A stretch of DNA of 56,211 nucleotides, counting the filler, from Platydemus manokwari (Eukaryota): assembly GCA_037951405.1 (NCBI GenBank). It is 4 parts of 4 records of this genome, joined end to end, with 100 filler letters (N's around TTAATTAATTAA, not from the genome) between each part and the next. Parts side by side here need not be neighbours in the genome. Positions count along the whole stretch, not along the records: positions 33,537 to 56,211 come from JBBMOY011222542.1; 3 more parts are not named here. The stretch is one strand, 5' to 3'. A program made the translations under genes and the position numbers. Under the pieces are notes generated by a model. That model was not told the origin of the DNA. It made no database searches and worked only from the letters and a program-made list of their open reading frames with translations. Shown piece by piece: positions 4,094-51,062 of this stretch (positions within the stretch are counted from its first letter, which is position 1; each line of letters starts with the position of its first letter).

Positions 4094-4417
<324 letters not shown>

Positions 4418-4571: not shown

Positions 4572-7500
4572 AATGCTTGGTGTATTTTTAACATAGCCGG
4601 GAAAGTACTTTTTAATGAGGTTTTTTATTTTTTACTTTTAAAGCTGATTATTTATTTGTTTCGTGATTTTTATTTAATATTAGTTTATTAATTATAATAA
4701 TTACCATAATCATTAATATATCCAATGATATCATGGCATCTTTCTCATTTCTCATTGGTTGCTTTGGATTGTTTGTAATCACTTGATAGCAATCGAGTTT
4801 CGATTCAATCAACCTTTCCACATCATTTGTGTAGAAGATTAATCGATAATGCGTTGGTAGAAAATTTGCAATTTAATGTGTGTTTATAAGAATAATTAGT
4901 TAACCAATCAAAACGCTTGAAAACAATTTTGAAATTAGTCATTTCTATGTTTGTTTAAATATAATAAACACGATTATTTCGGTATTCAGTTTTGCGAAAA
5001 CTATTTAAGTATTTATCATCGATTGTTATTATGTTGGATAATGAGTGAACATTTTTACCAGTTCTATCTTGGATGTGATATTGATTTTATTTTGAATATT
5101 CCACATCGGGTGTTTTATATCGATTTTGGGGTTCACAGAAAATATTAATGGAAATAATTAGAAACGATTAATGAAATAATATAAAATAAAATTTGACGGC
5201 TAAAATGGGAAAAATATCGAATAAAATAATTTTAATAGCAGTAGAGGGGCAGTCTTTGAATCATCTTTCGGTCCATTTGTATGCAGAGGCATACATGGAA
5301 AAAGTCTGTCATGCAGTCAAATAAATCTCCCTACTAGCCACTTAGAGTCTGTGACACCTGGCAAAGTATACTTGGGTAATCATTCTGATCTGTGGTTGGA
5401 CTTGCTGCTGACCTCGGGCTATTTTTAATGAAACTTGGTTGTCGGAACTCATAAAATTAATTTTTGTCCAAAATCTGGCCTACCAAATAATTGTTGACAA
5501 CTGAAGAATCGAAGGTTGCAAACTATATTTTCGTTAACGTTTACTGATCAGTACAATACAAGAGCGTCTACAAACATCTCAAAAATTACAAACGAAAACT
5601 TGGTTTTGTAGTAGCATTGTGAAATAATCCAATTCAATTAATTATGGACATGGACATCTGAGATAACGGAAAAGTACCCGTTTGGACTGAAAATGATCGT
5701 GAAAATTTAATTTTATGCTGGAAAATTATTTCACGAAAATGCAGGAAGTAGTGATTATGTTGTCATGGAGCGTAATTCTACAGGAAATTTGTCCTGGATT
5801 TTTTAATTTTATAAATTTATATCGGCTGAGATTTTATTGAAGTAATTTGATTGTAACCTTGACAACTGTGTTCTGTAATTTGATTGGAAGAAGATATGTC
5901 GGTATAAAAGCTAGATGTGCATTAACTAGCAGTTGACATACACATCAAAGTGACTGAGTGCAGCAGTCACGATGATTTGATAATGTGCGAAGCACTAATA
6001 AATCACCCAAGATATTAATGTCGAAACGATTGATTATTTTTATTGTCATTATTGTTGGGTTCACCTTTGAATTGTTTCGATTGCAACATTTACGCCCAAT
6101 AAGTGAGTCGATAGTTGTATAAATTATCACATGTTTGTTGCCTGCATAGAAAGAACACCATCACTATGTAAAATAATTGTATAACAGACGATTTACATTA
6201 TACTTGCAAATAACCGACCAACTTGCCTTTCACTAATTCTATTAATCCAGTACCTATGGCAACGGTCCTTGGGTATTTTTCGAATATCAATAACCAAAAT
6301 TAAAAATTCTAAACTATCGCCAACATCCTATTTATAACCACAATCTATCCTTGTAAGCGATCACGAATAAATAACCCTTTAATATCTCTTGAATAAGCGT
6401 TTCTCATCAAAATCACCAGAAATAGCTAAATACAATACCGAATTGGCCTACTATTTATATTATATACTAATGGCAAATTCAGGGTTATTTGGTAAATTAT
6501 TGTTGTTATTCCCTGAAGTTGTGAATAATTAATAGAGTTTTTCTTAATTATTTTAATGATTCTTGTCACTATTTAGGACCACGACGTCCGTAACCTGAAA
6601 TGTTAGTTTTTATAATTAATATTTGTGTTGGATTAATTGGGTTCATATCTGATCATATATTTGTCGTTAAATCTTGCTAAACACGGAAAATGTAATCGAA
6701 AACAGACCGAGCTTATTTTATATTTGATAAAACATTATTTTCAATTATCTAGTTAATCGCAGTGTAAATCAAAATTATTATTCGAATCATTCAATAGATG
6801 ACTTAGAGAATCTCAAATGCTTTGACTGGATATTCTTGATTGGTTTTGTAGAGCGGTAATACAGTTCACTGTTATGCCGGGTTTATGTTTCTCACATTTA
6901 ATGATTTTCTTCAATGAATTCATGGAATTTCCAAGAACTTGGTGTCAGCAATATTTATCGGTGTTCTGAGAAATCTTTTCAATTGATTTTAACAATTTGA
7001 CTATCCATGTGTTGTGAAAAGAACTTTTTCTTGGGCGAAAAATGTATCAAATGTATAATTTTATTTTGTAGAGAAAAACTGATCATTAGATGTGAATGTA
7101 AAATCTCACAATAAAATATTTTCTGTCATAAAATATCCTATTTCTCAAGAAAATATAATTAAATTATAAATATAAATAATATATAACTTAGCCAATTCAT
7201 GATTTATTATCAAATATAAATTATGAATATATTAATGAACTGGATAATCAATAAAAAACAGCTTTGAAATAAAAATTATTCCATATAAAAATAATTTAGA
7301 AAATTAGAAAAAATAAGAAAAAATAGCAACTGAGAATATATTTAAGTTAAATAAAATAACAGCATTTAAGAAAACATGGAAAAATCAGACATAAAATCCA
7401 GCATAGAAAACAAATGAAATTATAATAATTTATTGAAATAATTTATAATAATAACGATTATTTCATATAAAACAGAAATAAATAAATAACAAAATAAATA

Positions 7501-10500
7501 AAAAACAATAACACATAACGTCACATAAATAGGCCGACATCGGACAGTACCTTTATCTAAATTTAGAAATCACTATAACCCAATTAAAAAGAGGTACTAT
7601 TAGAAGATATTTATTTGTTCGATATCAAAATCATTACTATTTAAGCTATTCAAGTTCGTGTATTCTCAGTTGTTAACCTGTTACGTCCGGGCCTTATTGA
7701 TTTTATTGTTTTGTTAAGGTTAATCCTATTTGATACCACTATTGTCTTAATCAGTTTCTACGAGCTCTTGATTAAGGCAACAGGTGTAATCTACCTTATC
7801 TTGTTGTTCCTTCACCTCGCACAACCTTATTGTGTAAAGACAATGGATGTGGCAATTGTGATATATAGTGATATATAACTATGCTAATACCAACGATAAT
7901 GAATAATGATTTTATGACCTCTATATGATTAGGAACTAAATCTTGCTGCTACAGATATTTATTAATGATTGACACCAAAACAAAGCTGATTAAAAATAAT
8001 AAAATAAAAATGACAAATAGATTTTAAAATTACACTTCCGGTAAAACACTGGGCATATAGGGAATCCTATTATTCTGTATTGATTGATCTTATATCAATG
8101 CTGATTGAATTACAAAACGATGTATCTTCTCCAGTATATGACAATTGATGTGGTGTTTAAAGCTAATGCCAGTGAATTTATGATTTCGTCGATAAAATTT
8201 ATTATTGGTGAGAGAAATTCTCTCTGAATAAATTTATTACACAGAGAGCAATATTCTCTCGATTAAATATAATCGAGTGATTATTTTATCCAGTTACAGA
8301 ATTTATGTGCGCGATTACATATTAGGTATTGTTATTTTATAAATTACTATGTTATATTTTAGGGAATTTCAATTGACTTGTCCTAGACGGGTTTTACTAA
8401 TATTATTATTTTACATATTTATAAATAATAATAATAATAATTATAAATATTAATAAATTGTACCATTTTACAATAATTAATTTCACTCAGATAATCCAGG
8501 AGTTGTTAAGATATGAGCAATACACACTGTTTAAATAAAAATCCATACAATAAAAATTAATACCCATCTCAGATGTATTGTTATGCATTGTTATCAAATT
8601 TATACAGTGTTGCACATTGTTTTTTCAAGGTGAAGTAATTGTTGGGTCAAAATCCCGGCAAACCTATAGTTTTAAAATTGTTTTATTTTGGGGTTGTTGG
8701 TTTTTTTATATTTTATTTCTGTTTGTATTTTGGATTTTGATTGTGCCATATCAGAGTCTTATCAGTCTCGTGGAGTTCTCAAAACCCCAGATATCAACTA
8801 AACCTATTAATTTCTTATGATCTTTCTTCGCCTTGATCGTATCAATCCTCGTATGAAGACGGGATGAACGGCTCAATGTTATTGCTTTTGATTTTAACAG
8901 TCTCCTATTTTTATTGTTATTAAGAGCCTCTTTACACCCTTCCAAAAAAGTGATGAGTTGACAATGAAATTATTTTATTAAACTAATGAAATGAACCTTA
9001 TGACACTTGTCAAATCTAAAATTCAACTCGGTTACGTTTGCTAAAACTTATATTGCTAACAAATTACAACTAAAATAATTACTACAGGTATGTTTAAATA
9101 TAACAATACCTTTATACACTGAAACGGCAAGATTTTTAGCACAATTATGGACAAAAGCTCCGGTTAACAATGCTCCCAAGAGGAGTAGAACCGTTTATAC
9201 AAGTCTTTGGGCTTAACCCTATAAATAGGAAGAATATACGACGTTGATGTTGTAAATTGTCGATGATTTTACAGGAATTATCTTACTCGATCCTTGGACT
9301 TCTTCTCGAACAAATTGAATATCAATTATCAAAATTGATCCTCCAGATAAATCTGGGCATGTACTGGCAACAGGGAAATTGACTTCGGCAACGAATACTT
9401 CGAATGTTGATTACGACTAACAGGCGAGTGTGTTGTAACAGGCAGTTCGGAGGACTACTTATTTCACAGTCCCATTTATACGGGATTTTATTGATGGCGA
9501 ATTTCGATTTAAATGCGGGGTCTTTTCATTTCAATCCTCTTTTAAATGCGGGTTGTCATCGCTTTGTATGGGTGGATATTAATGTTCTTTATTATTTAAA
9601 AAAGGGAATTTATTTTATTCAGAGTTTATTTCTTGTTGCCAGCAGAATTTCATTTATTCAAAAATAAGGGCAATTTATTTTTATGCGGATGATTCTAATA
9701 TCTGGGTATTTTTTATAAGGTTAATTTTTAGGTGTTGGGTGAAATATTTTTGGGTTATTATTATTTTTAGGGTTAATTATATAAACGGTTCCAATTTATG
9801 ATTTTTCAATTTTATTTACAAAATCATTGTATTGAAAATTATTGAAAATTCTATTTCATTTTTAAGAATTCAATTCATATTTTGTTAACCTTTTGTCCAG
9901 AATGAATAAAAAATGAAAAATATAATTACCAATAAAACTCGTTACTCTTATACACTTAAAACAATTAAAATTTCATGCAAATCAAATGTTCCAAAAACCC
10001 AACAAAATTATCTGCCATAGTCAGTGGAACAAGTCATTTAATCCAGAAGTTCAGTAAAACATCGTCAATGATAAAATCACAAATAAATATTTATTCGTGT
10101 ATTTCATGTTTACCTGAGCTAAGCTCTTTCTTGAATTGGTTTTACTCACCTGTGAACCTTATTAAATAATAAATCTTTTATTCCAAATGAATATTTTATT
10201 TACTGTGCCCGATAATTGGCGATAGCTAATTCACTGAGCCATAATACATGAGGGGTTATTTATTATTATTATTTTATGGATGTTTCTTTTACAGGGGAAA
10301 TTTTCAAAGGATTTTTAAATTGTATTATTTTAATAGATATTTTAAAGGGGTAATACAATCTCATTTAGGATCGAATTCATATTGTATTCAATTTATATCA
10401 GCCACAGAACCTCAAGAATTTATACACAAAACACCTAATATTATTTCATTCAATTTCACATAAAAATATTCGATATAATTTCATGCAGAACACTTTCATT

Positions 10501-10849
10501 CATCAATACATGTTTTAGTCCCAAATTGGAACAAAAGTTGAAAAGAAAAAAGTCAATAGAATAGTACTTGGGTTTGTTAATAAATTTTGTACAATTGCTA
10601 TTGATGAGAAGGTAGGAACAATACAACTCGACAGAACTTAGGATTCAATTATAAAATTTTCTAGCGTTGCTCATCTTAAGCGATTGAGAAGAAAGAACAA
10701 CAAATATTATGGATAATTACTTCCCATGGATCATTAATACTCCGTAGAACTGATAAGACGCTGATGGTGTTAATAACTGTCAATAATAAATATAATTATT
10801 ATAATAAGATCATTAAAATGTTGGGTAATCGCAAATAATTAATAAAACT

Positions 10850-11175
10850 CTCAATCAAACTTGGCTTTCAACTAGCAGTTGTCCACCTTCACATCGATTT
10901 TTATAATTTGTATCATTTTGATTCGATATTTGTTTTTCTATGTTTTACATGTTTTATGTTTTTACATGAGTGAGACTGGTCAATCACTATGTGCATGTTG
11001 TTATGGAGCTATGCCCCTTTTATCAATTGCACATTACCATCTAACGTCACTATTATTGGCTGATTGCTATGCCTGTATAGTTATGTAGGCATGCAAATAT
11101 TTAAAGTGCCAAAACAAGGGGAACAAGATGCAAATCCGTTTTTATTTTTGCAGAATTTCATCTCACTAAACAAAA
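10850..11175 (+). repeat. Dispersed repeat family A, copy 1
   Basis: Shares 'cagttgtccaccttcacatcgat' and 'tttaaagtgccaaaacaagg...tgcaaatccgttttt...tgcagaatttcatctcact' with 46510-46857. Confidence 0.75.
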
Positions 11176-13905
11176 ATAACCCCCAAAAATAACATATAAT
11201 ATGATGAACACCATATATTAGTAATAACTGGTGTATTTAATGAATAACTTTGCATTGTGATACGAGATTACTTTAAAATGCGCAATTAAAATTTGTGGGT
11301 GTGGAGTATTTTATTATCTGTGTTATGTTTCTGTAATAGCCTCTATTTTTTACAATTTTAATTTGTAAATCTTTAGAAAAAAGAAACAAAAGGTAATTAA
11401 AAGTTACTAAAAATAGAAATTTCAAAATATTCCAAATTAATAATAATTATTATAAATCGATAATAATAATAAATAAATTCGAGTTAACTAAAAATAGGAC
11501 TATGTATGTTAGGCCAACAACAGAAAATTAGACCTACAAATTGTCACGCAACTAATTTTAGCTATCAGAAATTCATTGGGTGGCAGTATAATTTAGCAGC
11601 AGAATTCATTTGTGGATTCATACGAAATTGACCATAGCTTCAAGCAATTTGATTGAAGTGAAAATTAAAATTTAATCTAACATATCAAAATCATTTCAAT
11701 TAATGAGGAAATGAAGATCACTAGAAGATCTACCACCAAGTAAATTTAAAAACGCAACCAAACTAAATAAGCCAGCATTAAGACATGTATCGATTTAGTA
11801 TCATTCAGTAATATTAGTAATCGTTTCTCCACCTTTTCTCCACATGTGGTATCAATTTTATCTAAACTCCACCTATTAGCAGAAAGTTTTTCTCTGGCAA
11901 GGTTAAACAAACCGGCTTCGCTAGTCCCGTGTTATTTGCCTAACTGAACGGGTTGCGATTAATCACATTAATTATCAACAAATCTAATGTATATATCTGC
12001 ATAACCTCAATTAAGTTTTATATTGTTATTTGATTTATCATGTTCTATTAATATACACCTTTAAATATTATTCACGAACCGGCTATGGTACCAACAGATT
12101 TAGAGAGAGATTACATAAAGTTCACCCCAACACAAATATCAAGCACACCTCTATGAAATTTATTCAAATAATTTGAGATTAGAGGGAAAAGTCATTGATG
12201 CTAACGAGATTATAATATTATTAACAAGCGAATGTGCTGTGGTGTTTGAAAGTCTTGCGCCTAAGATATGGTTGTACCTTGAATTGGTAATGTGAGAAAA
12301 CCGAAAAAAACTAATATAATAATAGAATCTTGATACACTAGTAGCAATAAGGTAACAAAAAACTGTAAACTAATATAACCAAAGATAGCTTTTGTTTCTA
12401 AGGTCAATTCTGATACAGAGAATATGGGAAAGGTCACACTTTATTAACCAGTAAATTCCGAACGTCAATCATAATTCAATTACTCTCCTAGTATAATAAT
12501 CAAAAAGGAAATTGTTCTTTTGAATTATTGACGATAATTGTTGTAAGTAGTAAATGAAATTAAAATTTCTCTCCTCTGTTAAACAAATGAACGACTAGTA
12601 ATGGTTATGTGGGTTAATGACTAATCCACGACTATTTATAAACTCCTAAAATGAATTCTATCGATAAGGTAATGAAGACGTATAGATCTTGATAAATGCT
12701 GATTATTCGCTAAGCACTCAGCCCTGTGTGGGCTTTAGCGAATTTGCCTGAATGAAGCATGGTATTTGTAGTAAAAATAAAATAGACATAAAGAGGGCAC
12801 ATTTTTCTAACAAAAGTTGTAACAAAAATAAAATCCGTGTAAAAAGCGGAACCAGTCGTTAGTAGTCGGTTATGTTATTACAACCAAGCCCATTGCAGGA
12901 AAATGTTAAGAAAACATCAGTTTAAATATAAGCAGCAGTACTGATTATATGTTACTAATTCCCAATTATTCCCAAAATTAACCCAAATTATCGATCTGCA
13001 TTTGAAGAGTGCAAATGGTTTTCTTTCAAATGCTAAAATTCTCAATTTTAAATATCATTTCATTAGCGGATTGATGATATTTATAATGGGTTGGAACCTA
13101 GTTTTGTACTGGTTTGAATATGATTACAATAATTCATTATTATTCCCTACATTTTCGGGACTAACCAATTATTAAAACAACAAATAATGTATTTTCATAG
13201 ATCTGTTAAATCTGGTTTTATTACAAACTTGATGAGCTCTAATTACTGATCTGACCTCTTTCTCTTATGAACTAGGTAAACATGATGTTTAACAAAATAC
13301 TTCAATCACGAATTGATTATAACAGATATAGAAGAATGTCCTTCTGCCCGTATAACAGCACCGCGTAACAAATTACGGCTGATATAGTTTACAAACACAA
13401 CTACACAATACATTACCTTCACATCTTACAACCGACATTCGTTGTCAGAAATATACTTTAAGAAATGTCCTAATTCTTATCTATTTTTTGGTCTGGATCA
13501 AATGGCGCGATCTTTTATTTTTCTTCTGTATTTATATTATTTAGACCAACTGAGAAAGGATTTATACAACACATACTGTATAAGACGGTGAGAAATTTAT
13601 TTTATCAAATCTGTTGTATGTTTCATCTACTACAAATACAGTAATGAACATTTATAATTATAAATTATGGACTTTTATTTAATGTTGAAGTCAGACACCG
13701 TCGGGAGATAAATTTTTTATACTTTCATATGGTTATTGTGAGAATTATAAAATTTAAGTTTGAAAAATTTTATAAATAAATTAATAATTATAGTCAAATA
13801 TAATTTTTTAAAATAGTAATGGCTTACAGTAATAATAATGACAAAGACAATTATTACAACAATGGAAATAACAAGAATAATAAAAATGATAATAATTACA
13901 ACATC

Positions 13906-33536: not shown

Positions 33537-33685
33537 TTTAGCTTGAATTTCAGTCAATTCATGTGGCACTTCTCGACAGCGCCGATTGATCTTGCCAAGA
33601 GCGTGAAGGTGTCATACAACGGATGTCTGAGGAATATCGAGTTCAGCTGACAATCTGCGAGTACTTTTTGATGGATTGCTCTGGT
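33537..33685 (-). mobile_element. Mariner transposase fragment (second HTH plus VPHEL linker), cut by the gap
   Basis: Minus-strand translation NPSKSTRRLSAELDIPQTSVV*HLHALGKINRRCREVPHELTEIQAK, with a WVPHEL-type motif. Confidence 0.8.
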
Positions 33686-33779
33686 AAAAGACTGGTAAAA
33701 ATCCATGGAACTCAACTTCTTTTATAGACCCATTGGATGTGTCTGCTTGATGTCACGGATCTTCGTTTTCAATTCGCTA

Positions 33780-34025
33780 AATTTGTTTGTGAATCGATCT
33801 ACTCGAGATTTTCCTTACATCTCTTGTGCCATTGACCGATATTTGAGCTTGCTGCCATTTGTAGGTATATACCTGTCAATTCTTAGCTTCTAAATATAGA
33901 TTAACATTGCAATGAATCTGGTTGATTAATGGCACATGCGTTTATCGGGTTTTTGTGTATTGACCCTTTTTAGGGTTTTCCTGGGTTCTTGTGACCCTTT
34001 GGTTGATTTGTAATACACCCAACAA
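33780..34025. repeat. Dispersed repeat family C, copy 1
   Basis: 'atatttgagcttgctgccatttgtaggtat...attcttagcttctaaatat.gattaa...ggcacatg...cctttttagggtt...tgatttgtaat' is shared with 54050-54290. Confidence 0.8.
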
Positions 34026-35161
34026 ATCGACATAAAGATATAAATTTAATAATATTATCGCCACAAATGAAAACGTTTGATAAATATTTGGATCAACATT
34101 CATCATTGATGAAGAAATTAAAATCTAGAATTCCGAATTCATTACACTAATATGAACCTAATCAATGTTTACCATCCATGTTTGTTGGAACTACATTAAT
34201 CGAACCCTTGAGATATAAAACCAATAACCGTTATAATGATCAGCATCACACCAAACATATTATAATATGATCTAATAGTATTCTCAACTATTACACATCG
34301 AAAATTCCTATTCTATGTTCAACAATCAATTCAACCATGTTTACCATCAACAAATATTTATTATCCATTGTCAAAACATGTGAAACTGGATCGAGTGGAA
34401 TAAATGATTGTCGAGTTATAAATTATGAAATATCACTTAAACTTTCTATGAAAATATTATTTTTAATTTTTAGAATATATAAATTCATATAATACAATAT
34501 AAGCTAAGTTAATGAAAAAATTCTTTTTAAAAGAAGATAACTATGCAAGTATTTATGAATAAAGGTTTCCAAATTAATAAAATTTAAAATAGAAATCTTC
34601 TAATCATAAATAACAGTTATAACTACCAAAATAATTTTAAAAATTTACAAGGATATTTATTTTCATCTCTTCTCGGTTATAATAAACAATCAATTATCAA
34701 TATTAGTTTATCACTTCATTATATGAGATTGTTTGAATGGACTACTTATATATATATAATATCATGATTAGCTAGTAAATTTAATTTCATGGAAGTTAAC
34801 ATCCTCATGTCGGAATTAACTTTGTTGATAAATGGTAACTTATTTATTGACAAAATTAAATTTTATTCTAATTTAAAACTAAATCATTAACAAAATTCAA
34901 TTACAGAGTATATGAAGATAAAATAAAGGAAGTACTCAATGTAAAGTTGGAATATTTTAATTATTAAATCGAAAATGTTGTAAAATTTTAAATATAAATA
35001 AAAAGAAGTGTTTGTGTTGTAATGATCACAGAAAATGTATTCGAAATTTTTATATTTTTCAAAATCAAATGATTAAGTTGACAGAAATAAAATAAATATT
35101 TTTCAATTTAAATAATTTTTAACTTGTGACCTAATGTAAAATCATTGTTTTTTTGTTTCAG

Positions 35162-38035
35162 GTTAATCATTTAGAACATTCCAGGTTCAATGATTTGAGA
35201 CTAAATAAAGAACAAAATCAATTAGATGAATTCGATAATTGGTTTGACAAATGCAGTGAACAAGCGAAAATTGATATCAAGAAGGATATACAAATCCTTG
35301 AACAAATATTACAATCGATTATTCATTATGAAAATGATCGATCAAACATCAAACAAACATTGTCCACAGTTGGCGAATTGACTGAAAAAATATCTTACAA
35401 CGATCTTGGAGATAGTGACAATCGATATATTCGAAATCGATATGGATATATTCAACGAAATAAAAGCAAATCGATAAACAAAGACGGAATATGTTTTGAA
35501 CAACTTTATCACTTAAAAATTATTTTTCTCAGTGAAGAATTTGTTGATTCATTTATTCTCAATGACGAAATAAGAGGATTGAAAAGAGATCTCTGTAATC
35601 TGAAAAGTAAGATTGTTCATATTTTATTGGATCATAAACCATTGATAAATAACACGAAGATAATAATTGGTATAAAAAGCGATTTTACTATGGCAGTAAA
35701 CAAAATAGTGGATTTCTCTCGAAAATATTACGAAATGATTATCTTTTCACATATGAGAGAGATAATAAAGTCAATTGATGAAATTGATTTCTCATTATTA
35801 AGCGATAGATACTATTTTGCACGTGTTTTTTGCATCATTGGTGAAATGTTTCGTGAATGGTTTGACGAGAAAGAACGAAATACTGAGCTGATTTTGGTAA
35901 AAAACTTCAAATATTTTGTCGAAATGAGAAACAAATTGATTCATCACCACGAGAAAATTAGATCTGGATTCGAAAATAAATACCGATCAATCAATCAAAT
36001 GATAATCAATATTGTTAAACATTTGAATAAAGTCATTGATGAAATCCATTTAAGTTGTGATAATCAATGTCATATCAATTTTTCGTATGGCGAAGTTGAT
36101 AAATTTCATAAGGTCGTCAATGAACTGATGAATACATTATTCGAGAGAAATATAGATGCACAAACACGACATGAATTAAATATATTGATAAATAGAGCAA
36201 AAAATCGGTTTAAGAAAATGACAAATAAAACAGATATAAAATCATTTGAAAATCGATTATTAGAACTCGATAAAAAATATCAAAATTATTTGAAGAATTT
36301 GAATACAGACATTGGATACTGTTATCCCACAGAGTTAAATATAAATAATATGAAATCTATTAATGAATTTGGTCAAACACAAATAGCGAGAATAGAAGTA
36401 ATCAATAAAGAAAAAGAATTTGAACGAAAACTTAAATCAAGGAAAGAAGATTTTGAATTTCTTTTGAATATTATCAAATCTAATGTTACAAAAAAATTAA
36501 GACGTAAACAAGGATATATTGTACAATACATAATAGCTGTATTTTCTCAATCTTTAAGGGACATGGAAAATCTGAATATCTGTAACAATGCAAAGGTATT
36601 TAATTCGTCTGAATGTGTAGAAGAAAATCGTACAAAATTTTATTATTTGCTTAAATTTACTTTATCTCCATTGGTTACAGAAAGTAAAAAAATTATAAAA
36701 ATGTTTAGAAATCGCGGTTTAGTGCATAATTTATGGTGTTTTGAGACAGAAAATTTAGATTATAGCATTAACCGTTTTCATAGTTTATATATCCAATTTG
36801 AAGCCATTTATGATGCATTAAACAAAGACAATTTGAAAATAACGGCACAATTCTATTGTGAGATTGCATCGATTTACACAAATATTAACTTGTGCAATGA
36901 AGCCATCGAATTATTTGAGAAAGCACTAAAGCGATTTGATGATTATCCTAATGAAGTTGTACAAATAAATCCCTTGGATTTAGAGAAAGAATATAAAACT
37001 CTATTTCATCTTTCTCCTATTGTTAGTCAAACTAATATATATTTAATTTTTTGTTACTTATCATCTGGGAAATTCGCAAAGGCTTATGATGTTGCCTCTT
37101 CATTGTATAAAAATATAAATCTTGATAATCTTAACTGTGTCAGTAATCAAATATTAGATGACATTTGTGTAATTTTCACAGTATTACTTAGATTCGATAG
37201 AAACGAAGAACGATTTAAACAATTAAATGATAAAATCGAAAAATTGTCATCATCAAACAATTTTGCAAAGTATTTTCTAGCTCAATTATGTTCGAATAGA
37301 GGTGATAAAGCACGAGCTCTAGAGTTATACAAAGAACTAATTAATGGAAATTGTGAAAAATCAATACGATTTGATGCATTGGTAAATTATGTTGAAACAC
37401 AATTATTGAAACACAATGATATGATTCCATGGTCTGACATCAATAAATATTTAGATGAAATAGAAATGCTTTTGAAAGAAAATATTTATGAATTTAAAAT
37501 GAAATTTGCTGGCAAGTTTATGTCAGTGGAAATGATCCCAATAATTTTTAGAACGCTTTGTATCACGAAAAATTTTACAATTTCCATCAATAACTCCCAA
37601 GAAATTGAAAATATTGAAGATCTGTCAAGTCAATTTAAAAAATTTCTCAAAATACATGACAAGTTTGAAAATGATACCGATGTTCTTTTTGTGCCATTTA
37701 TGTTTTATAATTTGCATTTGGGCGTTCATATGAAACGGATATGTTTGGATTTGAAGAGACAAAATATATGGGATGTACAATATTATTACGATTTGATCAC
37801 AGATATTGGTGTGAGATTTCCAGAAAAAATATCAAATTTGAAAACCCAATCATCATCTGTTTTACGCAATTATTTTATTGATGCATTCAATTTTGTGTTG
37901 GCTGATGAAAGGTTGAGTAAAAATATGAAAATAGAACAATTTCAAGAAATGCTGACTTTATTTGAAAATTTCGACTCGGAAATAGCAAATTTTTTGCTCT
38001 CTTGTATAAAATTTAGTATAAGATCACGACAATGA
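35162..38035 (+). CDS. Large exon of an uncharacterised protein with two HEPN-like (R-x4-6-H) domains and C-terminal TPR repeats
   Basis: 2.87-kb stop-free frame in AT-rich DNA. The ORF-track TTG start lies inside a polypyrimidine acceptor (ttttttgtttcag|GTT, phase 0). DUF86/HepT-like motifs YFARVFCIIGEM...EMRNKLIH; second motif MFRNRGLVH. TPR-like AQFYCEIASIYTNINLCNEAIELFEKALK and AKYFLAQLCSNRGDKARALELYKEL. Confidence 0.8.
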   Translation, partial: VNHLEHSRFNDLRLNKEQNQLDEFDNWFDKCSEQAKIDIKKDIQILEQILQSIIHYENDRSNIKQTLSTVGELTEKISYNDLGDSDNRYIRNRYGYIQRNKSKSINKDGICFEQLYHLKIIFLSEEFVDSFILNDEIRGLKRDLCNLKSKIVHILLDHKPLINNTKIIIGIKSDFTMAVNKIVDFSRKYYEMIIFSHMREIIKSIDEIDFSLLSDRYYFARVFCIIGEMFREWFDEKERNTELILVKNFKYFVEMRNKLIHHHEKIRSGFENKYRSINQMIINIVKHLNKVIDEIHLSCDNQCHINFSYGEVDKFHKVVNELMNTLFERNIDAQTRHELNILINRAKNRFKKMTNKTDIKSFENRLLELDKKYQNYLKNLNTDIGYCYPTELNINNMKSINEFGQTQIARIEVINKEKEFERKLKSRKEDFEFLLNIIKSNVTKKLRRKQGYIVQYIIAVFSQSLRDMENLNICNNAKVFNSSECVEENRTKFYYLLKFTLSPLVTESKKIIKMFRNRGLVHNLWCFETENLDYSINRFHSLYIQFEAIYDALNKDNLKITAQFYCEIASIYTNINLCNEAIELFEKALKRFDDYPNEVVQINPLDLEKEYKTLFHLSPIVSQTNIYLIFCYLSSGKFAKAYDVASSLYKNINLDNLNCVSNQILDDICVIFTVLLRFDRNEERFKQLNDKIEKLSSSNNFAKYFLAQLCSNRGDKARALELYKELINGNCEKSIRFDALVNYVETQLLKHNDMIPWSDINKYLDEIEMLLKENIYEFKMKFAGKFMSVEMIPIIFRTLCITKNFTISINNSQEIENIEDLSSQFKKFLKIHDKFENDTDVLFVPFMFYNLHLGVHMKRICLDLKRQNIWDVQYYYDLITDIGVRFPEKISNLKTQSSSVLRNYFIDAFNFVLADERLSKNMKIEQFQEMLTLFENFDSEIANFLLSCIKFSIRSRQ

Positions 38036-39068
38036 TATTATTGAAAGTGGTGAACAGATATCCCCTGGTTGGGAATTTCATTATTTCTGCAATGCAACAT
38101 TATATTTCATATTAAATTTTGAAAATGGCAATCTTTTGATATAATTTTGTGATTATTTGTTACGCTATTTGTTTGAAAATATATTTCATATATAAACTTA
38201 TTAATAAGATGTCATTAACATTTAAAATATTTATGTATGTGTTATTCAAACACAAATCTGATAAATAAGTTTAATTTGAATGGTTATTATTGTCATTAAC
38301 ATTAGTATTATGACGATTATGGGATTTATTATAAACATAAATAGTGAACAAACATAAATAAAATTCAATAAATGAATGGTTTGTCGCTTTTTTAAATAAA
38401 GATCTTCTACTTTCTGCATATTTGTAAACTATTTCTTATTCTTTTGACTTTTAGGGATGCAGCTGCTTACTATTAATTAATGATTTTTATCGGTTGGTGT
38501 TAATCTTAACATATTTTCAAATGTTTGTGAAATAGAGTCAACAGTAAATTCAATAAAAGCATTGGCTCAAGTTAATAAAAGGGGTCTTTTGACATACTTT
38601 CGTAATGATGAATTTTTGCACAAAGGTAATTTTATAACTTAATTTTATGTATAACTGCGATGTTTGATTTATTTGTATAATTCAGTTAATATCTTACTTT
38701 TAGGATGGCTTGTAGAGACAAAAAAATAGTTTCTAAACCAAGTCCTTATTCTAATCATGGCACCTTTACATGATGTTTTTATTTTGCAAATTTTAATTTA
38801 TTTTATTATAAATTAACTTTGGAAACTCATGACATGTATAATAATCTAATATTACCTGTTTTATCAAATAATTGTATTGAGTACCGAAGTACCTCAAAAA
38901 ATTAAAGTGTCTCAACTTGCTTCAAATATTAAAAAATGGTTCTTGCTAATTTTCAATAAATTGCAATTTAACTTATTTAATCCGTTTTTCAAATAATCAA
39001 ATTTTAGGCGATTTTGGAGCTCTATTTAATATTTCATTTCAAATAACTAAATTCTTCTTAAGCATTGA

Positions 39069-40342
39069 TTGGGTTGGTGCATAAATTCGTGCGGTTTCAT
39101 TTGTTGCAAAGAAAACACATCAACTTCTTGTTTTAACTGATTTGAGTTATAGACATTCAGCTGAATTATCTATTTAAATCATTTTAGACTAACTTTTATT
39201 TTCATTACCATAATTAAACTGGAGTGTCAGGTAGATAAAAATGAGAATTTCCGGCATCTACTCCTTTTCTATTTCGATCAATATTTAAACGCTGCAGAAG
39301 CCACCAGAATAATTTGTTGCTTTAATGGAGAAAAACCAGTCAGTGAACGAACAGTACACTAATAGAAACTTTGATTTAAACAATGCACCTTGGTCAGGCC
39401 GACCTATTTACTTTGATGAAGATTCTTTAAACCAATTAATTCATGATGACCAGCGTCAATCGACACGAGCGCTTGGACAGGCCATGGATTGTGATCACAC
39501 CACTATTTCTCGACATCTCAAGAAAATGGGAAAAGTTCAAAAAGTTTGGATTTCAAAGAAAAACACAAAAACCAATGTGTTTCTATTTCTGCATCTTTAC
39601 TCATTCGCCATCAGTCTGCTGTGTAGCAACATCAATATTTCCTTTCCAGGATAGTAACAATTGATGAGAAATGGTGCCTGTACGTAAATTTGAAACATAA
39701 AAAAGCTTGGGTAAATCCTCAAAAGCAATCACAACCACGTGCGAAACCCGAAGTTCACCATCGCAAAATCTTGATGTGCGTTTGGTGGAACTAATTTGAT
39801 GTTATTCATTAATAAATCTAGCCCAGAAACCAAACAATCAATGCCGAACTTTATTGTGAACTGCTCAAGCGAGTAAACACTGCAATCAAATCGAAGAGGA
39901 CCAATAAGAAGCAGATACAGTATAACAATGCTCGGCCTCATGTCGCCACAGTGGGCTATTGAAGATCTTGGCTGGTAAGTTCTTCCTCATTCTCCGTATT
40001 CGCACCACTTAGCTCCAACAGATTTTCATCTTTTCCACTCCATGTCGAACCATCTTTTTGGTCTCACATCTGAAAACGAAGAAGTAATAACAAAGTGAAT
40101 TGAAGAGTTTTCGAGCAAAAATCATAAAGCTTCAAACGTGGAATAGACAAACTGCCAGAACGTGGAAGGAAGTGATCGATTGTGGCGGAGAATATCTCAT
40201 CGATTGAAACTGAGATATTTGCTTTTTCTAATGATTTCATAAATTCATTTTGTTATCTGGAATTTATTGCATGGTTTTGGTTGTTGATCAGTATGCATTT
40301 TTCATAATTGTAAAAAACCGTACAAACTTATGCACCATCCAA
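39069..40342 (+). mobile_element. Near full-length (~1.27 kb) decayed mariner, probably mellifera subfamily
   Basis: TIRs ttgggttggtgcataaattcgtgcggttt (39069-39097) and aaaccgtacaaacttatgcaccatccaa (40315-40342). Transposase motifs FRHLLLFYF, SGRP, RIVTIDEKW, NARPHVA and HSPYSHHLAPTDFHLF; multiple frameshifts and stops. Confidence 0.92.
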
Positions 40343-40860: not shown

Positions 40861-41853
40861 TTATTTCAATCTAAAATTAACCATCTTTGCGATCTCAAGC
40901 TCATCTTTCAGATCGACCAGAAGACCTTGGAACGCATTACTAGTTGTGATCCAACTAATATAAAATTCAATCTTTTTACATGCTGGCTTTAAATTATCTG
41001 TGGAATTTTTCAACAAAACTCGCATATCTGAGAGAGCGGCAGCAATGAATTTTCGATCTGTTTTTTCAGCATTCAAAAAATAGAACAAATCATCAACAAT
41101 CAACAATAAAAATTCATTATTAAGAGGAATTTTTGCATTGGAGGCATTAAAAACAAATGATCCGATCACATCTTCCATTGAATTAAATGTAGCTGGTGAA
41201 TTGAGAAAGAGATTTGGGCATATTTCTTGTAGAATATCTGTAATTTCATCAGTAAAATTGTGATGGTCACCATTGTAACGCCTCGTTATGTAAGAGTACG
41301 ATAATATGCAGCTCATCACGATATATCTGATAGATTTATTAGGTGATTTTGAAATTAATTTATCAATCGAAATAATATTCTTTAATAATCGCGGCACCTT
41401 ACCATTAATATTAGAATCAACTTCTTCAACCATATTAAATATCCACCAAGGCTTCCAACATTTAATAAATTTCTTTACTTCTTCTGAATCTATAAATTTA
41501 TAAAATTCTTCTTTTTCTTTATCCGTCAATCTTTCCCAAATATCATCTGTATCATCTAGTGTTAGGTCATATAATCTTTCTTCTAATGATTCAACAGGTG
41601 AAGTTTTTGAAGGGTATTCCTCTGAATTTGCTTGTGATGATAATATATCCTCCATTTTCTCTTTCATTTCTTTAGAAACACGAACTCCTTCTAGTTCTTT
41701 CATACAACACTCTCGATAAAAATCTTCCGAACATTTTATATGTTTTTCAGATTTGTAACAGGGTAATGAACAATAATCTAAGTTACACCTTGGACATTTA
41801 TATTTACCCGGGTTTTTAGTACATATATTACAGAGATTTAAATTTTCATCCAT
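40861..41853 (-). CDS. ZNHIT2: Zinc finger HIT domain-containing protein 2 (single exon)
   Basis: N-terminal zf-HIT CNIC...YKCPRCNLDYCSLPCYKSEKHIKCSEDFY, followed by the ZNHIT2-type motifs IWERLT.KE.EEF, WKPWW and KKIEFYISW. Confidence 0.85.
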   Translation of the reverse strand: MDENLNLCNICTKNPGKYKCPRCNLDYCSLPCYKSEKHIKCSEDFYRECCMKELEGVRVSKEMKEKMEDILSSQANSEEYPSKTSPVESLEERLYDLTLDDTDDIWERLTDKEKEEFYKFIDSEEVKKFIKCWKPWWIFNMVEEVDSNINGKVPRLLKNIISIDKLISKSPNKSIRYIVMSCILSYSYITRRYNGDHHNFTDEITDILQEICPNLFLNSPATFNSMEDVIGSFVFNASNAKIPLNNEFLLLIVDDLFYFLNAEKTDRKFIAAALSDMRVLLKNSTDNLKPACKKIEFYISWITTSNAFQGLLVDLKDELEIAKMVNFRLK

Positions 41854-42663: not shown

Positions 42664-45485
42664 CTAATAATTAAATCGGCAATTTCCCAATCGTTTTTTG
42701 AACAATTTTCTCGTGGATTTTCTTTTAAACTTCTTACCAAGCGAGATAGTTTTGCCAGAATGATGTTTCGAATTTTTCATCGATCGATCTTTGCATGAAA
42801 TCAAATTCTCAATAATTGCAGCGCAATTATTTATTTCATTGATGTTTTGTTGATTTGCAAAATTGCAGCTCTGATTTTCATCATAACTTCCTTTGTCCAT
42901 ATCAGTAGTTTCGATTTCCTCTTCTGACGGTTGGCTGCCTTCTTTTTCTTCTTCATCAGGATTTTCATCATCTTGTTCATCTGGATTCTCGTCACCACTT
43001 TCATCGGCATTATCAATACCACTTTCATCAGCTTCTTTTATTTCTTCATTTGTTTCTTCTTCTACCTCTGCTGAGTTGGGCTCTGAGACCGAAACGTGAT
43101 ATTTTACGCATGACTTTGCAAAATCACTGTCTGCGTCATCATGTATATTTGTTTTGGTATCACCGATGGTGGTATCTGCATTACCAACGTTAATATTATC
43201 TTTTGAGGTTAATTTATCAGTAATACATTGATTTTGCTGATTACTTTCCGGTTTATTATCACTATCAGCTACAACTTCTTCATAGTCTTTAACCAACGCA
43301 CTAATGTTGTATAATGATTCCGTAAATTCACATTCTTCCATTCCTTCACCAATGAACCAGTGAACAAAAGATCTCTTTGAATAGAGCAGATAAAACTTAT
43401 GAGTGAGTCTTTGCCACGCTTGTCCAATTGCTGATGTATTAGCAAGCATTGTGACATTTTTCGTTGTCTGACATATTTCACTTGCAGGAATTGTTGTGGG
43501 TGGACAGATATTTATTCCTACTTTGAATCCCGTCGGACACCAGTCAACAAATTCTATATTTTTATCTCTTTTGATTTCATTCAAAGCAATGTAAACATGG
43601 TATGGACTAACATCACCACGATAAAATAAACTGCAAGACATAAACCGACCAAATGAATGATCAATTTTCATCATTTGATTTTCTTTTTCAAATACTGCTC
43701 TTGTCAAATCACAAACAGATAATTCTTCATGTTCTGCTTTCGATGCCGATAAAACAGGAGCAAAATTAGCTAATGGAAAATGTATTCTTGGATAAGGTAC
43801 TAAATTAGTTTGCAAAACTGATATATCACAGTTCATTACACTTTCAAACCGAACTGACGCAGTGATTGAGCTGGTTAACTGACCTATAAGTCGATTTATT
43901 GTATTGTATGAAGCTTGAGATATAGATAAATATTTGGAACAGATATCATATAGAGCTTCATTATCGAGCAAAAGTCCAACATCGATGTCTTCCATACAAA
44001 AGTGTTCACTTAAAAGACAGTTATATGGTTCTACCATAGCTGTTGATAAAGTTGGAGAGGGATATATGGGCATTTCAATTTTTACCAATTTTGGATAATC
44101 GACTAAACTATCAAATATCGCTGATGTTAAACCTGATCCTGTCCCACCACCAAGGGATCTAAAAATAAAAATTGCCTGAGTATTGGCACCATTTTCTAAG
44201 AGCTTTCTAATTTCATGACTAATAACTCCAAGAAGTAGTTTTCCAACTGTGAAAAATCCTCTAGCAAAATTGCTGGCAGCATCTTCAGGTCCTGAAATCA
44301 GTCTGTCGGGATGAAAGAAATTTCTGTAATTTCCAGTTCTGACTTCATCTAAAAATATTATGTATTTTATTTATTTTTATATTTGAAAATATATAGTTAT
44401 ATAAGTAAAATATAAATAAGTAAAATATAAAGTAAAAGAATTATAAATATAAATATAAATTATAATAACGTGAAATTTTGATGATTTTGGTTACCAGAAG
44501 AATAAAATATATTTTATAGGTGTTAGATTTTGCGCAAAGTTTTTAACTGTAAAATTAAATATTCTAATAACTAAGTTATCAGTAAGATTTCATAATAAAT
44601 TTGTATCGTGAAAAATATTAATCAAGAACAAAGAGTTTCACAGAAACAACATTGAATAAAAGGTGTCCGACTAATTTCAATTGAAGGACATCAATATGTT
44701 TATATGGAACCAAAATTGAAATCACAAAAACCTAGTATACAACCGTGAGTGAATCATGAAATCTAAGATTTGAAATCCTATTTGCTACTGCCGAGAAGAA
44801 TTTTGAAACAAGTTTTATGGTAGAGTGCATTCTGTGATTATCATTGGTTAAACCATCAACCAATTATAAATATTTATATTTTAATGATTGTAGTCGATTA
44901 TAAGCTATAAGTAACCAGTTCAATATTCTAGTTTTATTAAAAACAAACTACGTTTGGTATCATATTTATATGCCAGTTTCAAGATGTGTCTATTGATAAG
45001 ATTGATCTCACTTGTGATGTCAAGGTTAGTAATGAAAGAATGAATGATTATAACCAATCAAAATACGACATGATCAATGATACAATGAGAATTGATTATT
45101 AATTAATTAATTATTCGTTAACAATCCATTATAATTAACATGATAATAAAAAAAATAATGCAAATTCCCATTTACATCGATAGGATATATACATAGGATA
45201 AAAATATTCAAATTACCTATTACTGTTGCCTCTAGATCAATGAAAAGATTTCTCGGAACAAATTTACCAGAATGAGAATACGAAAAGAAAGTGTCTAGGC
45301 ATTCTATATGGAGGCTTGGTTCTTTCAGGTCACCGCTTTCGTTTATACCATGTTCAGTGGCAAGCAATTCCCAAATAGAATTTCCCATTTGAACTCCAGC
45401 TTGACCGATATGCAAGGAAATGATTTCCTTCTACAATTTAATTAATATTTTTCAATAATAATGAAGCGATTATCAAACATACCAT
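42664..45485 (-). CDS. TUBA: Highly divergent alpha-tubulin with ~200-aa C-terminal extension; 3 exons (45485-45483, 45430-45217, 44348-42664), 633 aa
   Basis: ATG|gtatgt intron directly after the start codon and a phase-1 intron at TVI-G|AT, both typical animal alpha-tubulin positions with GT-AG ends and an in-frame join. Motifs [57 protein letters not shown]. Confidence 0.92.
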
Positions 45486-48647: not shown

Positions 48648-51062
48648 TTATGTCTTTAATACATCTTTTCGTTTCTTTGCCATCTTTTTAATCATTGCCT
48701 TTTTTTCATTTTCAATACCAGTTTTCCTCAAATTTCCAATAGCTCCTGCAGCTGCCAGTTGTAATTCAGTATTTTCTGATCCAATCATGTTTATAAGCAG
48801 ATGTGAAACACCAGCTTGGTTCATTTCACGACTATTATTTGGATCTTGACTCAATTTGTACAATGCCCTAGCAGCAGAAGCATGGACTAATACTTCACTT
48901 GAACGGAGAAAGTTCACCAATGGAGTTATGACATTGGCTCTTCCAAATTGTTCCCTGTTATCTCTATAATCACAGCAAACGGCTATAGCTTCTGACAATG
49001 ACTGCCTCAACTTATCATTGTCCGTTTTCACTAATCTTGATAACAATCTTACAACTCCGAGATCACTTAATATGGCTACATTATCACTCTCTTTTCCCAG
49101 TTCAGCTATTAGTGCACAGGCTGCTGAAAGAATATCTTCATTTGTTGATTCCAGTTGCTTAACTGTCAATTCCAAACTGCCGACCAATGTTTTAATGAGA
49201 CTTCCAGAATGTTCCGTATGAGTACAGCATGATTTAAGAGCCTCTAAAGCAGCCGCTACAACAAACGCTTTAGAATGCTTTGTTATTGCAAATAAAATAG
49301 GTACACCGTCTAATTTATTTATTTCTGCCATACATTCTGGGTTCTTAGCACATTCTTTCAAAACGCCAATCGTATTAAACAATAAATTTTCTTCGTCCAT
49401 TTGTAAAAGTGAGATTAATTTTTTCGTAGAATTGTTAGCATTAATCAGTTTTCTCCCTTCTTCTAATTTAGATATTTCATAAAGAGCACCGGTGACATTT
49501 ATCATTATCTTTTCTGCCTTTTCCAATTTATTAAGAGTGTGGGAAGCCGATATTTGAGGCCGTAAGTAAATTTGAAACGACTTAGGTAATGTATCCAATA
49601 TTTTCAATAATAAATTCGTACCATTTTTCGTGTTGACTTCAACTGCATTAATTGGACAGAGACAACATTTCCATATCGCTCCAGTGATAGCATAAAGAAG
49701 TTTCTGATCGCCTTCCGGATCGAGATGAACTATCAGTACTTCAATACCACCAAGATTTCTCACTAAAGTTCGAGTTTCAGAATCGACTGCGCATTTGAAA
49801 ATTGTTAATCCACTTTGGGTGCGTAACCATAAATTGGGGCTATTCAAGTGTTTTATCAAAATTGGCATCATTCCTTCAGTTCTTATAGAAATCCGATAAT
49901 AGAGTTCAGATGCACATTGTTGTAATGTTCCAATAACTGGTATAAGAATATTTTGGTTATCTTTTCTCAAAAGTTTTGCTAGTAGAGGTATTACTCCTGC
50001 TCTTCGCATACACACTCGATTTCTTTTTGATTTACTTACTTTCCACAAAGCTGTAGCGGCGTTCTGAGTAACGGAGACTTGCATGGAATCCCTTTGAGCA
50101 GTACTAGGACAGTTTGTTTGTGTTGAAGAATTTGATGATTTATCTATATCCAGTAAGTAAACTAAATGACCTATTCCGTCAAATCTTCGAATGTTTGAGC
50201 GAGCTCTTTTGAATACAGCTAATTTTGCTAATGTATCAGCTGCTAAACACTGGAGGTCAGCATTGTGATGTTTTAAATTTTCTACGAGTGGCTGTATACC
50301 ACCTAGAAAGGTAACATTTCTGCAATAAAATATGATGTTAGCAAGCTCTCTTATAATTTTCAAAGATCCTATTCGACATCTCATATCATTTGCTGTTAAA
50401 AGATTCAATAATAATGCTATTCCATCACTGTCTTCCATTGCTCTCATACATTCCGGTGACTTGAGCTTGTTATTATTCATATAACAGAGACATAAGAGTG
50501 TTGCATGGACATTTCCTATCCTTATGTATCGCAATAATTTTGTCAACTGCCAGTATATAGGGCTTATTTGTACATCTGATTTTTGATAAATAATCGACTC
50601 TAGGAAATCTAAATGTTTTGCCTCTTCATCTTCAGACTCTGAACTACTATCAACATCATCATATGTTTGTTGACTATTGGTCTGTTTATATAAACGTTTA
50701 TGAAAATTCTTCATTCTTGTCACAACATCACTATAGTAGCCAACATCATATTTTGCTTTGACTCGTTTCATTATTTTCTCATAAGATTTAAACGTATTTT
50801 CTCGACATTCCAAACTGGAATTAGGAACGGTTTTCGAATAGAGATATGTATTGTATTTCGAATATTTCGATTTGGCACTGGTATTCAATTGTTTCGTGTT
50901 ATCAGGTTTCATGGCATTATTTTGGTTAGTTGTTTGGGCATTGAATTGGATGTAATTTCTACTCAATTTATCCTCAATATATTCATCAATTCTATTAAAC
51001 ATCTGTTGTCTTTTTTCATCTTCATCATCATCAACAATGACATTTGATTGATAGGTTGGCAT
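48648..51062 (-). CDS. ODAD2: Armadillo-repeat protein, ARMC4/ODAD2 (outer dynein arm docking; gudu)-like, single exon
   Basis: 804-aa ORF. An acidic linker (DSSSESEDEE) precedes YWQLTKLLRYIRIGN.HATL, LIPVIGTLQQCASE.YYRISIRTEGM, TGAIWKC and RALYKLSQDPNN, all ARMC4-characteristic, within tandem ARM repeats. Confidence 0.85.
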   Translation of the reverse strand: MPTYQSNVIVDDDEDEKRQQMFNRIDEYIEDKLSRNYIQFNAQTTNQNNAMKPDNTKQLNTSAKSKYSKYNTYLYSKTVPNSSLECRENTFKSYEKIMKRVKAKYDVGYYSDVVTRMKNFHKRLYKQTNSQQTYDDVDSSSESEDEEAKHLDFLESIIYQKSDVQISPIYWQLTKLLRYIRIGNVHATLLCLCYMNNNKLKSPECMRAMEDSDGIALLLNLLTANDMRCRIGSLKIIRELANIIFYCRNVTFLGGIQPLVENLKHHNADLQCLAADTLAKLAVFKRARSNIRRFDGIGHLVYLLDIDKSSNSSTQTNCPSTAQRDSMQVSVTQNAATALWKVSKSKRNRVCMRRAGVIPLLAKLLRKDNQNILIPVIGTLQQCASELYYRISIRTEGMMPILIKHLNSPNLWLRTQSGLTIFKCAVDSETRTLVRNLGGIEVLIVHLDPEGDQKLLYAITGAIWKCCLCPINAVEVNTKNGTNLLLKILDTLPKSFQIYLRPQISASHTLNKLEKAEKIMINVTGALYEISKLEEGRKLINANNSTKKLISLLQMDEENLLFNTIGVLKECAKNPECMAEINKLDGVPILFAITKHSKAFVVAAALEALKSCCTHTEHSGSLIKTLVGSLELTVKQLESTNEDILSAACALIAELGKESDNVAILSDLGVVRLLSRLVKTDNDKLRQSLSEAIAVCCDYRDNREQFGRANVITPLVNFLRSSEVLVHASAARALYKLSQDPNNSREMNQAGVSHLLINMIGSENTELQLAAAGAIGNLRKTGIENEKKAMIKKMAKKRKDVLKT

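Follow-up and report, generated by a model that had tools for sequence, protein, structure and literature searches.

A gene of the animal Platydemus manokwari (assembly GCA_037951405.1) is best explained overall as a nuclear animal gene of bacterial descent, whose product combines two HEPN-like domains with a tetratricopeptide repeat (TPR) array and is a candidate regulated RNase. This explanation as a whole is held with about as much confidence as doubt. The gene lies in a stretch of 56,211 nucleotides, filler included, which was joined from four parts of four records and is called the window here; the part that holds it (positions 33537-56211, from JBBMOY011222542.1) is AT-rich, at approximately 29% GC. 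Residues of the encoded protein, the window protein, are counted from position 35162. The features of the gene, in order along the DNA, are the following.

35149-35161, + strand: splice-acceptor-like polypyrimidine tract ending in CAG, abutting the first codon of the frame (from reading of the sequence)
35162-38035, + strand: protein-coding open frame of 957 codons plus a TGA stop (38033-38035), with 33 relatives in an exhaustive phmmer search
35243-35641, + strand: conserved N-terminal domain, residues 28-160, with the signature YIRNxYGY...GIxFExLYHLK (from alignments)
35654-36061, + strand: HEPN-like domain 1, approximately residues 165-300, a helical bundle with an IIGE helix and RNKLIH (predicted local distance difference test score, pLDDT, of 85.6 for the domain model)
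35834-35845, + strand: IIGE helix, residues 225-228 (from the motif table)
35927-35944, + strand: R-x4-H motif 1, RNKLIH, residues 256-261 (R256 and H261), followed by HH
36377-36835, + strand: HEPN-like domain 2, residues 406-558, a four-helix bundle with an IGQ-type helix (FSQ in this copy) and RNRGLVH
36707-36727, + strand: R-x5-H motif 2, RNRGLVH, residues 516-522 (R516 and H522; from the domain-2 alignment)
36845-38032, + strand: TPR-like helical repeat region, residues 562-957, with repeats recognisable at residues 562-594 and 705-730

The frame and the placement of its motifs are as the original prediction gave them, except that the residue numbers used there run 3 higher, the frame having been counted from a TTG, where it opens at 35153. 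An open frame of 957 codons in DNA of 27% GC is far beyond chance; by composition arithmetic, approximately 8% of random codons would be stops.

The window protein belongs to a family. The exhaustive phmmer search returned its 33 relatives at E<1e-3, 16 of them at E<1e-10; they are mostly 1,100-1,400 residues long, at 23-50% identity. The only name that any source gives to any member is 'TPR repeat protein'. Together they constitute an undescribed family with a fixed architecture, in which an N-terminal domain is followed by HEPN-like domain 1, a helical linker, HEPN-like domain 2, and the TPR array. NCBIfam and PADLOC contain nothing relevant for the window protein or its relatives, and a word-indexed protein search with the whole window protein gave no match. 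Searches of PDB sequences with the protein and with three profiles found only TPR or designed helical proteins. Scanning the GTDB species genomes and IMG/VR with the most conserved peptide patterns of the family yielded no relatives, and a metagenome scan added only two further loci.

In an alignment of 24 sequences with a mean column identity of 21%, residues G95, G109, Y217, G227, and R256 are invariant, while R91, N92, Y94, R216, E228, E232, H261, and H522 are nearly so; of these, H261, E228, E232, R91, N92, and H522 are conserved in at least 90% of the sequences. The motifs recur in a constant layout: YIRNKYGYIQ in the N-terminal domain; IIGEL, approximately 28 residues, and then R-[NDS]-x-L-I-H-x-H in domain 1; IGQ and then R-N-x-G-L-A-H in domain 2. 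The residue after R256 is N, D, S, T, or G. In the domain-2 alignment, H522 is present in all 20 sequences and R516 in 19 of the 20, and the residue after the arginine is mostly N. Both R/H pairs are conserved across the family, and all three animal copies that were examined have them. Every member, the lacewing protein P0016 and the L008 copy among them, is in the motif table, and it is this table together with the alignments that places the residues first singled out in the original prediction among the most conserved of the family.

The number of motifs by itself carries no such signal. Plain R-x4-6-H motifs number two, where shuffled sequences give 3.2 on average, and RN-type motifs also two, against 0.6 expected from shuffles. 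As judged from the sequences, then, the motif count is not above chance and the conservation of the motifs is. The idea that the motifs are chance occurrences in a low-complexity helical protein was rejected, as within a real family no positions are better conserved than these. A profile alignment of domain 1 with domain 2 (hhalign) sets the G-E/G-Q helix, the arginine, and the histidine in register (P 0.0016). The alignments and the motif table thus bear out the earlier proposal of two HEPN-like domains, each with a family-conserved R-x4-6-H motif and an upstream G-E or G-Q helix.

The best conserved part of the family is the N-terminal domain, in which R91, N92, Y94, G95, and G109 are the invariant or nearly invariant positions. 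It has no Pfam match, and an atlas feature search with residues 28-165 gave no match either. Its model has a pLDDT of 84-97 over residues 21-120, with a dip to 72 at residues 121-130, and contains short strands. The sequence QTLSTVGEL, at residues 67-75, had been read as part of a third, degenerate HEPN unit near the N-terminus. This reading is not supported: the domain carries an RN-YG signature with no conserved histidine, has short strands, and gave no match.

The TPR array, by contrast with that third unit, was correctly anticipated. In the window protein, the Pfam matches at residues 562-594 and 705-730 remain below threshold (18.8 bits against 27.9), and the bacterial relatives have a longer and less degenerate array. 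The family profile, however, matches consensus TPR proteins with an E value of 8e-37, and relatives exceed the Pfam TPR thresholds at positions homologous to residue 562 onward (e.g., TPR_2 in P0008, 62.7 bits). The phmmer alignment with P0008 extends to residue 924.

Assignment of the two domains to the HEPN superfamily draws on profile comparisons and on structure models. The three commonest Pfam families for domain 1 among 22 members are HepT-like (four members), HEPN_Cthe2314 (three), and HEPN_AbiU2 (two); all are below threshold, and all three belong to the HEPN clan, out of 24,736 Pfam models. For domain 2, HepT-like is found in two members, again below threshold. Over all scans of the members, the best E values are 1.5e-4 for HepT-like, 5.2e-4 for HEPN_Cthe2314, and 3e-3 for AbiU2. 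An atlas feature search with residues 150-330 gave no named lead for domain 1. The nearest language-model neighbours of the whole protein are clusters of HEPN_LA2681 with TPR and of DUF4145, at weak similarities of 0.82-0.84 that serve as leads only. AlphaFold2, run with the family alignment on residues 1-600, gave a confident model with a pLDDT of 80.6 and a predicted template modelling score of 0.76.

The model of residues 406-558 was compared with known structures by a search independent of Foldseek. Five HEPN-superfamily structures are the best natural matches of domain 2: HepT of Shewanella (5yep_B; Z 10.4, root-mean-square deviation 3.2, 117 residues aligned), a HEPN toxin (7ae2_A; Z 10.3), the DUF86 protein YutE (1ylm_B; Z 10.0), an integron-cassette HEPN protein (3jrt_A; Z 9.2), and the C-terminal domain of the ANT(4')/kanamycin nucleotidyltransferase (6nlt_A; Z 8.3). 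The HEPN structures listed by Anantharaman et al. (2013; PMC3710099) include 1ylm, 3jrt, and, as other PDB entries, the aminoglycoside nucleotidyltransferase C-terminal family. Domain 1 is likely, and domain 2 probably, a HEPN domain. That at least one of the two is a true HEPN domain is quite probable; that both are is somewhat less so, while still leaning towards the affirmative.

A series of results weighs against the HEPN assignment. No member of the family reaches the threshold of any curated HEPN model, and the window protein has no HEPN match at all. Profiles of either domain retrieved no solved HEPN protein from the PDB sequences and no stand-alone HEPN protein in a word-indexed search, and hhalign gives the relation between domains 1 and 2 a probability of just 16%. 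For domain 1, the best structural match is CheA P1 (Z 8.6-9.3), ahead of HepT/DUF86 structures at Z 6.8-7.1, and for domain 2, de novo four-helix bundles with comparable Z are scattered among the natural matches; the scores for both domains fall in the range (Z below approximately 13) that the search tool warns is common for helical bundles. As modelled, the shape of domain 1 is that of a generic helical bundle and does not discriminate for HEPN. Foldseek found no match to either model in the PDB at E<=0.001. The domains might then be unrelated up-down helical bundles that came to resemble HepT by convergence, with the conserved arginine and histidine needed for an interface or for a different chemistry. 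The function of CheA P1 itself needs a histidine, and designed bundles score as high as HepT against domain 2, both of which favour such a view. It is nevertheless distinctly unlikely, given the HEPN-clan identity of the three commonest weak Pfam families, the five different HEPN-superfamily structures among the top natural matches of domain 2, and the order of a small-residue/acidic helix, approximately 28 residues, and R-[NDS]-x3-4-H, which is the DUF86 layout in both domains. A milder alternative accepts that the domains are HEPN-derived and denies them nuclease activity, with the R/H residues acting in RNA or nucleotide binding or in structure and the TPRs as scaffold or sensor. Inactive HEPN families have been described (PMC3710099), and Swt1 and several others are inferred to be inactive; in the window copy, moreover, the IGQ helix of domain 2 is degraded and the domain carries an insert. 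Inactive families, however, usually lose the arginine or the histidine, and here both pairs are kept in nearly all members at 20-30% identity, including all animal copies, which makes this alternative unlikely too, if less so than convergence.

The bacterial side of the family is seen in the contexts of the relatives. The gene for P0007 lies on a proteobacterial contig, whose PurL is at best 62-64% identical to Betaproteobacteria, and adjoins a Tn3 transposase, a resolvase, Fic/RhuM, and a PIN toxin. P0008 is encoded downstream of a MazE/PIN pair and a resolvase, and P0019 amid Fic, HipA-coupled, and ISL3 genes. On two unrelated bacterial contigs (L001, 6454-9711, and L013, 261-1592), a serine resolvase and a PIN toxin with a small antitoxin immediately precede the family gene, and L001 also carries the Tn3 transposase and Fic/RhuM; this suggests that the family gene travels as cargo of Tn3-type elements. 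Other members are fused to deubiquitinases. P0012 has an OTU domain ahead of the module, and P0038/P0040 has a RickCE CE-clan deubiquitinase in the same position, on a contig of 28.7% GC (L003) with a second giant CE-clan protein adjacent. This AT-rich, putatively symbiont-type contig carries the best full-length match to the window protein. We take it to be bacterial from its two giant intron-free open reading frames (ORFs) and effector-type domains, with no confirming housekeeping gene. The adjacent ORFs, at 279-5513 and 6070-11676, encode 1,744 and 1,868 residues. Each has RickCE/Ulp1-type CE-clan protease domains, joined in the first by a GTPase/AAA region and in the second by the N-domain/HEPN/HEPN/TPR module, and the two resemble a pair of modular effectors from an intracellular bacterium.

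Further relatives have animal or eukaryotic contexts. P0016, with predicted introns, is located on a 100.7-Mb chromosome of the Chrysoperla carnea assembly GCA_905475395.1 (PMC10116181), and P0042 is an intact copy of 1,329 residues adjoining a gene that joins BTB and HTH_psq, an arthropod-type architecture. A gene-poor 14-kb metagenome contig with a 609-residue member (L095) is probably eukaryotic DNA; two ORFs of 189 residues each, with weak DUF4441 matches, are found downstream of the member there (6299-6868 and 8917-9486). The closest relative of the window protein (L006; 48% identity) has a frame shift near the equivalent of residue 220 (323-1019). In another (L007), 5001-8574 is called as three ORFs, yet a single tblastn alignment runs through them, and the 5 kb upstream have no called genes. 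Both interrupted copies are from metagenome assemblies and could be pseudogenes, assembly errors, or the result of a different genetic code.

In a maximum-likelihood tree, the window protein, the lacewing protein, the L008 group, and the RickCE-fused proteins form one clade (support 90/93), with P0008, P0019, and P0007 outside it, and the animal copies thus fall within the bacterial diversity of the family. Inside the clade the tree does not fix an order and the window branch is long, so that it gives no count of the transfers. From the sequences compared, we infer that the window gene is of bacterial descent, the direction of transfer being drawn from the distribution of the family and not from a rooted test. 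The bacterial ancestry that had been suggested for the protein is thus supported, together with a patchy distribution in animals, by the bacterial and animal contexts of the relatives and by the tree.

The gene itself is embedded in eukaryotic DNA, with eukaryotic flanks and host-like GC content and depth. Its GC content (27.3%) equals that of the upstream flank, and downstream of it are a fragment of a mariner-type helix-turn-helix protein, a zf-HIT gene, an intron-split tubulin gene, and an Armadillo (Arm)-repeat gene. Logan contigs of a public read set cross the start (34905-35264) and the end (37768-38292) of the frame with a depth of 8-17, like the unique flanks; the run possibly derives from the sample behind the window assembly, and thus provides a second assembly, not an independent sample. 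In the one public run with the locus, summed contig depth at 33600-33990, 38525-38720, and 38919-39312 is approximately 5,000-32,000, compared with approximately 10-30 around these stretches, which are high-copy host repeats on both sides of the gene. A repeat search for element ends around the gene gave nothing meaningful. A misjoin of animal sequence with DNA of a symbiont or contaminant was considered, as the relatives include bacterial genes and the best full-length match is on the putative symbiont-type contig. Contamination is very unlikely because contigs bridge the gene ends at host-like depth and high-copy host repeats lie on both sides; the intron-containing tubulin gene and the Arm-repeat and zf-HIT genes, the splice acceptor at the frame start, and the lack of other bacterial ORFs point the same way, and contamination or misassembly was rejected on these grounds.

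The window copy might be a non-functional relic of transfer, untranscribed or untranslated and open only through its youth, and several observations count against a functional gene. The first ATG in the translated frame is found only at approximately residue 190, so the start codon must sit on an upstream exon; a donor scan of the 1.6 kb at 33537-35161 gave no credible ATG-plus-donor for a 5' exon, with one trivial candidate. A search of public sequencing runs found no RNA run holding the locus. The window protein sits on a long branch (2.05) and is atypical in composition, the G of the IGQ helix in domain 2 is lost (FSQ), and a low-confidence insert is present in domain 2 at residues 476-500. 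The gene is also placed between high-copy repeats and beside the mariner fragment, and its closest relatives (L006 and L007) look broken. Against decay stands the length of the frame in DNA of such low GC content, and the full GC match to the flanks speaks against the gene having arrived very recently, except from a donor just as rich in AT. Of 37 columns with at least 80% conservation among the other members, the window copy keeps 29, the changes at the remaining eight being mostly conservative, and a canonical polypyrimidine-CAG acceptor (cattgtttttttgtttcag, then G) is placed exactly at the frame start. The probability that the copy is a relic is accordingly low, well above that of contamination.

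Depth also varies within the gene. Over 35176-35963, its N-terminal third, summed contig depth is 57-117, against approximately 15-30 in the rest of the gene; depth does not equal copy number, and near-identical (at least 95%) partial copies may be present elsewhere in the genome. Among the neighbours, the ORF at 39325-39654 on the + strand (109 residues; Pfam HTH_38, E 5.7e-5, below threshold) resembles the N-terminus of a mariner-type transposase and is probably a transposon fragment. The remaining three genes are on the - strand. The zf-HIT protein (40861-41853; E 3e-12) has 330 residues. The tubulin gene (42664-44088 and 45107-45415) has an intron of at least 1 kb, matches Tubulin_C (E 2e-37) and the Tubulin GTPase domain (E 7e-13), and encodes an unusual C-terminal extension of approximately 200 residues, acidic and of low complexity, that ends in a basic tail. 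The Arm-repeat protein (48648-51062; Arm E 3e-31) has 804 residues encoded in a single exon; its gene and that of the zf-HIT protein are unremarkable neighbours of eukaryotic type.

A return to the preferred explanation, a bacterially derived gene for a dual HEPN-like protein with TPRs, requires comparison with known systems. HepT/DUF86 proteins (PF01934; 5yep, 7ae2, 6m6u, 1ylm), the HEPN toxins of MntA-HepT (MNT-HEPN) toxin-antitoxin systems, share with the family the helical bundle and an 'IGE'-type helix followed by RNxxxH; they provide the best natural matches of domain 2 (Z 10.0-10.4), are among the matches of domain 1, and are the commonest weak Pfam family for both domains. The differences are considerable. 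The best score to the Pfam model is 19.5 bits (P0003), short of the gathering score of 23.5 bits, and the window protein has no match. The HepT motif is RX4HXY, while the present motifs are R-x-x-L-I-H-x-H (RNKLIHHH in the window protein) and R-N-x-G-L-A-H-[DN]-I-F. HepT is a homodimer of chains of approximately 135 residues, whereas the present family has two domains in a single chain of 1,000-1,300 residues, with an extra N-terminal domain and a TPR array. Unlike in MntA-HepT, no Pfam nucleotidyltransferase is found among the called neighbours in three bacterial loci (L001, L005, and L013), where a few small neighbours have no Pfam match and a divergent partner is possible; for the animal locus such a partner is not at issue. 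Because the Pfam threshold, the RX4HXY motif, and the MNT-type partner all fail, we take this to be a new HEPN-like family and not the member of DUF86/HepT that had been proposed.

LA2681-like HEPN-TPR proteins (PF18733), which likewise combine HEPN with TPR and occur in conflict or mobile settings of bacteria, form the nearest named language-model clusters (0.83-0.84). This fusion was described by Anantharaman et al. (2013; PMC3710099). The present family differs in having two HEPN-like domains and a specific N-terminal domain, and no Pfam match to PF18733 is found for the window protein (E up to 1) or for the aligned N-terminal parts, which hold the HEPN region, of 24 members (E up to 0.1). 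Cas13 has two HEPN domains in one polypeptide, which jointly form one RNase site. The likeness of the present family, with two motif-bearing domains in one chain, is one of architecture only; neither sequence nor fold gave a match, a CRISPR context is lacking, and a guide-RNA-binding lobe is not evident. The standard example of a HEPN RNase switched by a ligand is RNase L of animal immunity. It combines ankyrin repeats with a KEN domain and, like DZIP3/hRUL138 and C6orf70, joins a repeat sensor to a HEPN-type RNase domain. The window protein, in which HEPN comes first and the repeats last, has no Pfam match to these families at E up to 1, and its nearest relatives are bacterial and not pan-animal. 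The claim that the protein resembles no animal HEPN protein stands in this respect and needs qualification in another, since animal HEPN-TPR fusions, DZIP3/hRUL138 and C6orf70, have been described (PMC3710099).

A further parallel exists with the mosaic OTU/CE-clan deubiquitinase toxins of the 'intracellular mobilome' of Rickettsia, Wolbachia, Cardinium, and others, one with TPRs, which have been transferred to arthropod genomes (Gillespie et al. 2018; PMC6133264). P0012 and P0038/P0040 resemble these in the domain ahead of the module, while the window copy has no deubiquitinase domain. That paper has no mention of 'RNase' and no occurrence of 'HEPN', and the N-domain/HEPN/HEPN/TPR module is not described there. 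HEPN-TPR fusions (LA2681, DZIP3, C6orf70) and single-chain dual-HEPN nucleases (Cas13) are thus known already; what is new is their combination with an own N-terminal domain, covered by no family model and common to bacterial mobile elements or effectors and insect chromosomes.

An active site of the HEPN type needs two R-x4-6-H motifs, supplied in trans, as in HepT dimers, or in cis, as in Cas13. By analogy with these, the two HEPN-like domains would pack as an intramolecular pseudo-dimer with one composite RNase site, and the TPR array would bind a protein or peptide ligand and gate the nuclease. The bacterial module would be a conflict protein, acting in defence or as a toxin on mobile elements, and, where fused to deubiquitinases, a host-directed effector. 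Conflict or effector roles are proposed because of the mobile islands with toxin-antitoxin and Fic genes and the fusions to host-directed deubiquitinases. In the animal, the protein may have been recruited as a regulated RNase, with immunity or genetic conflict as the most plausible setting. A catalytically active RNase in this animal is possible, with doubt slightly outweighing confidence. More speculative, and doubtful at present, is a scenario of repeated domestication, in which a conflict or effector module of bacteria was taken over by insects, and perhaps by further arthropods, to form a new class of effectors in innate immunity or genetic conflict; a single-chain, Cas13-like dual-HEPN RNase would be switched on when its TPRs bind a pathogen or symbiont protein, and the RN-YG domain would be a new regulatory or RNA-binding module.

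In many bacterial defence and toxin systems, and in RNase L of vertebrate immunity, the killing is done by HEPN RNases. If true, a dual-HEPN enzyme that is protein-only, has a single chain, and carries a repeat sensor would be a new architecture among them, for which the conserved residues are direct targets for mutagenesis. As Pfam, NCBIfam, and PADLOC have no model for the family, defining it would improve the annotation of several bacterial and insect genomes. Its occurrence in bacterial mobile islands, effector fusions, and insect chromosomes would add to the cases in which defence or toxin machinery has passed from bacteria into animals.

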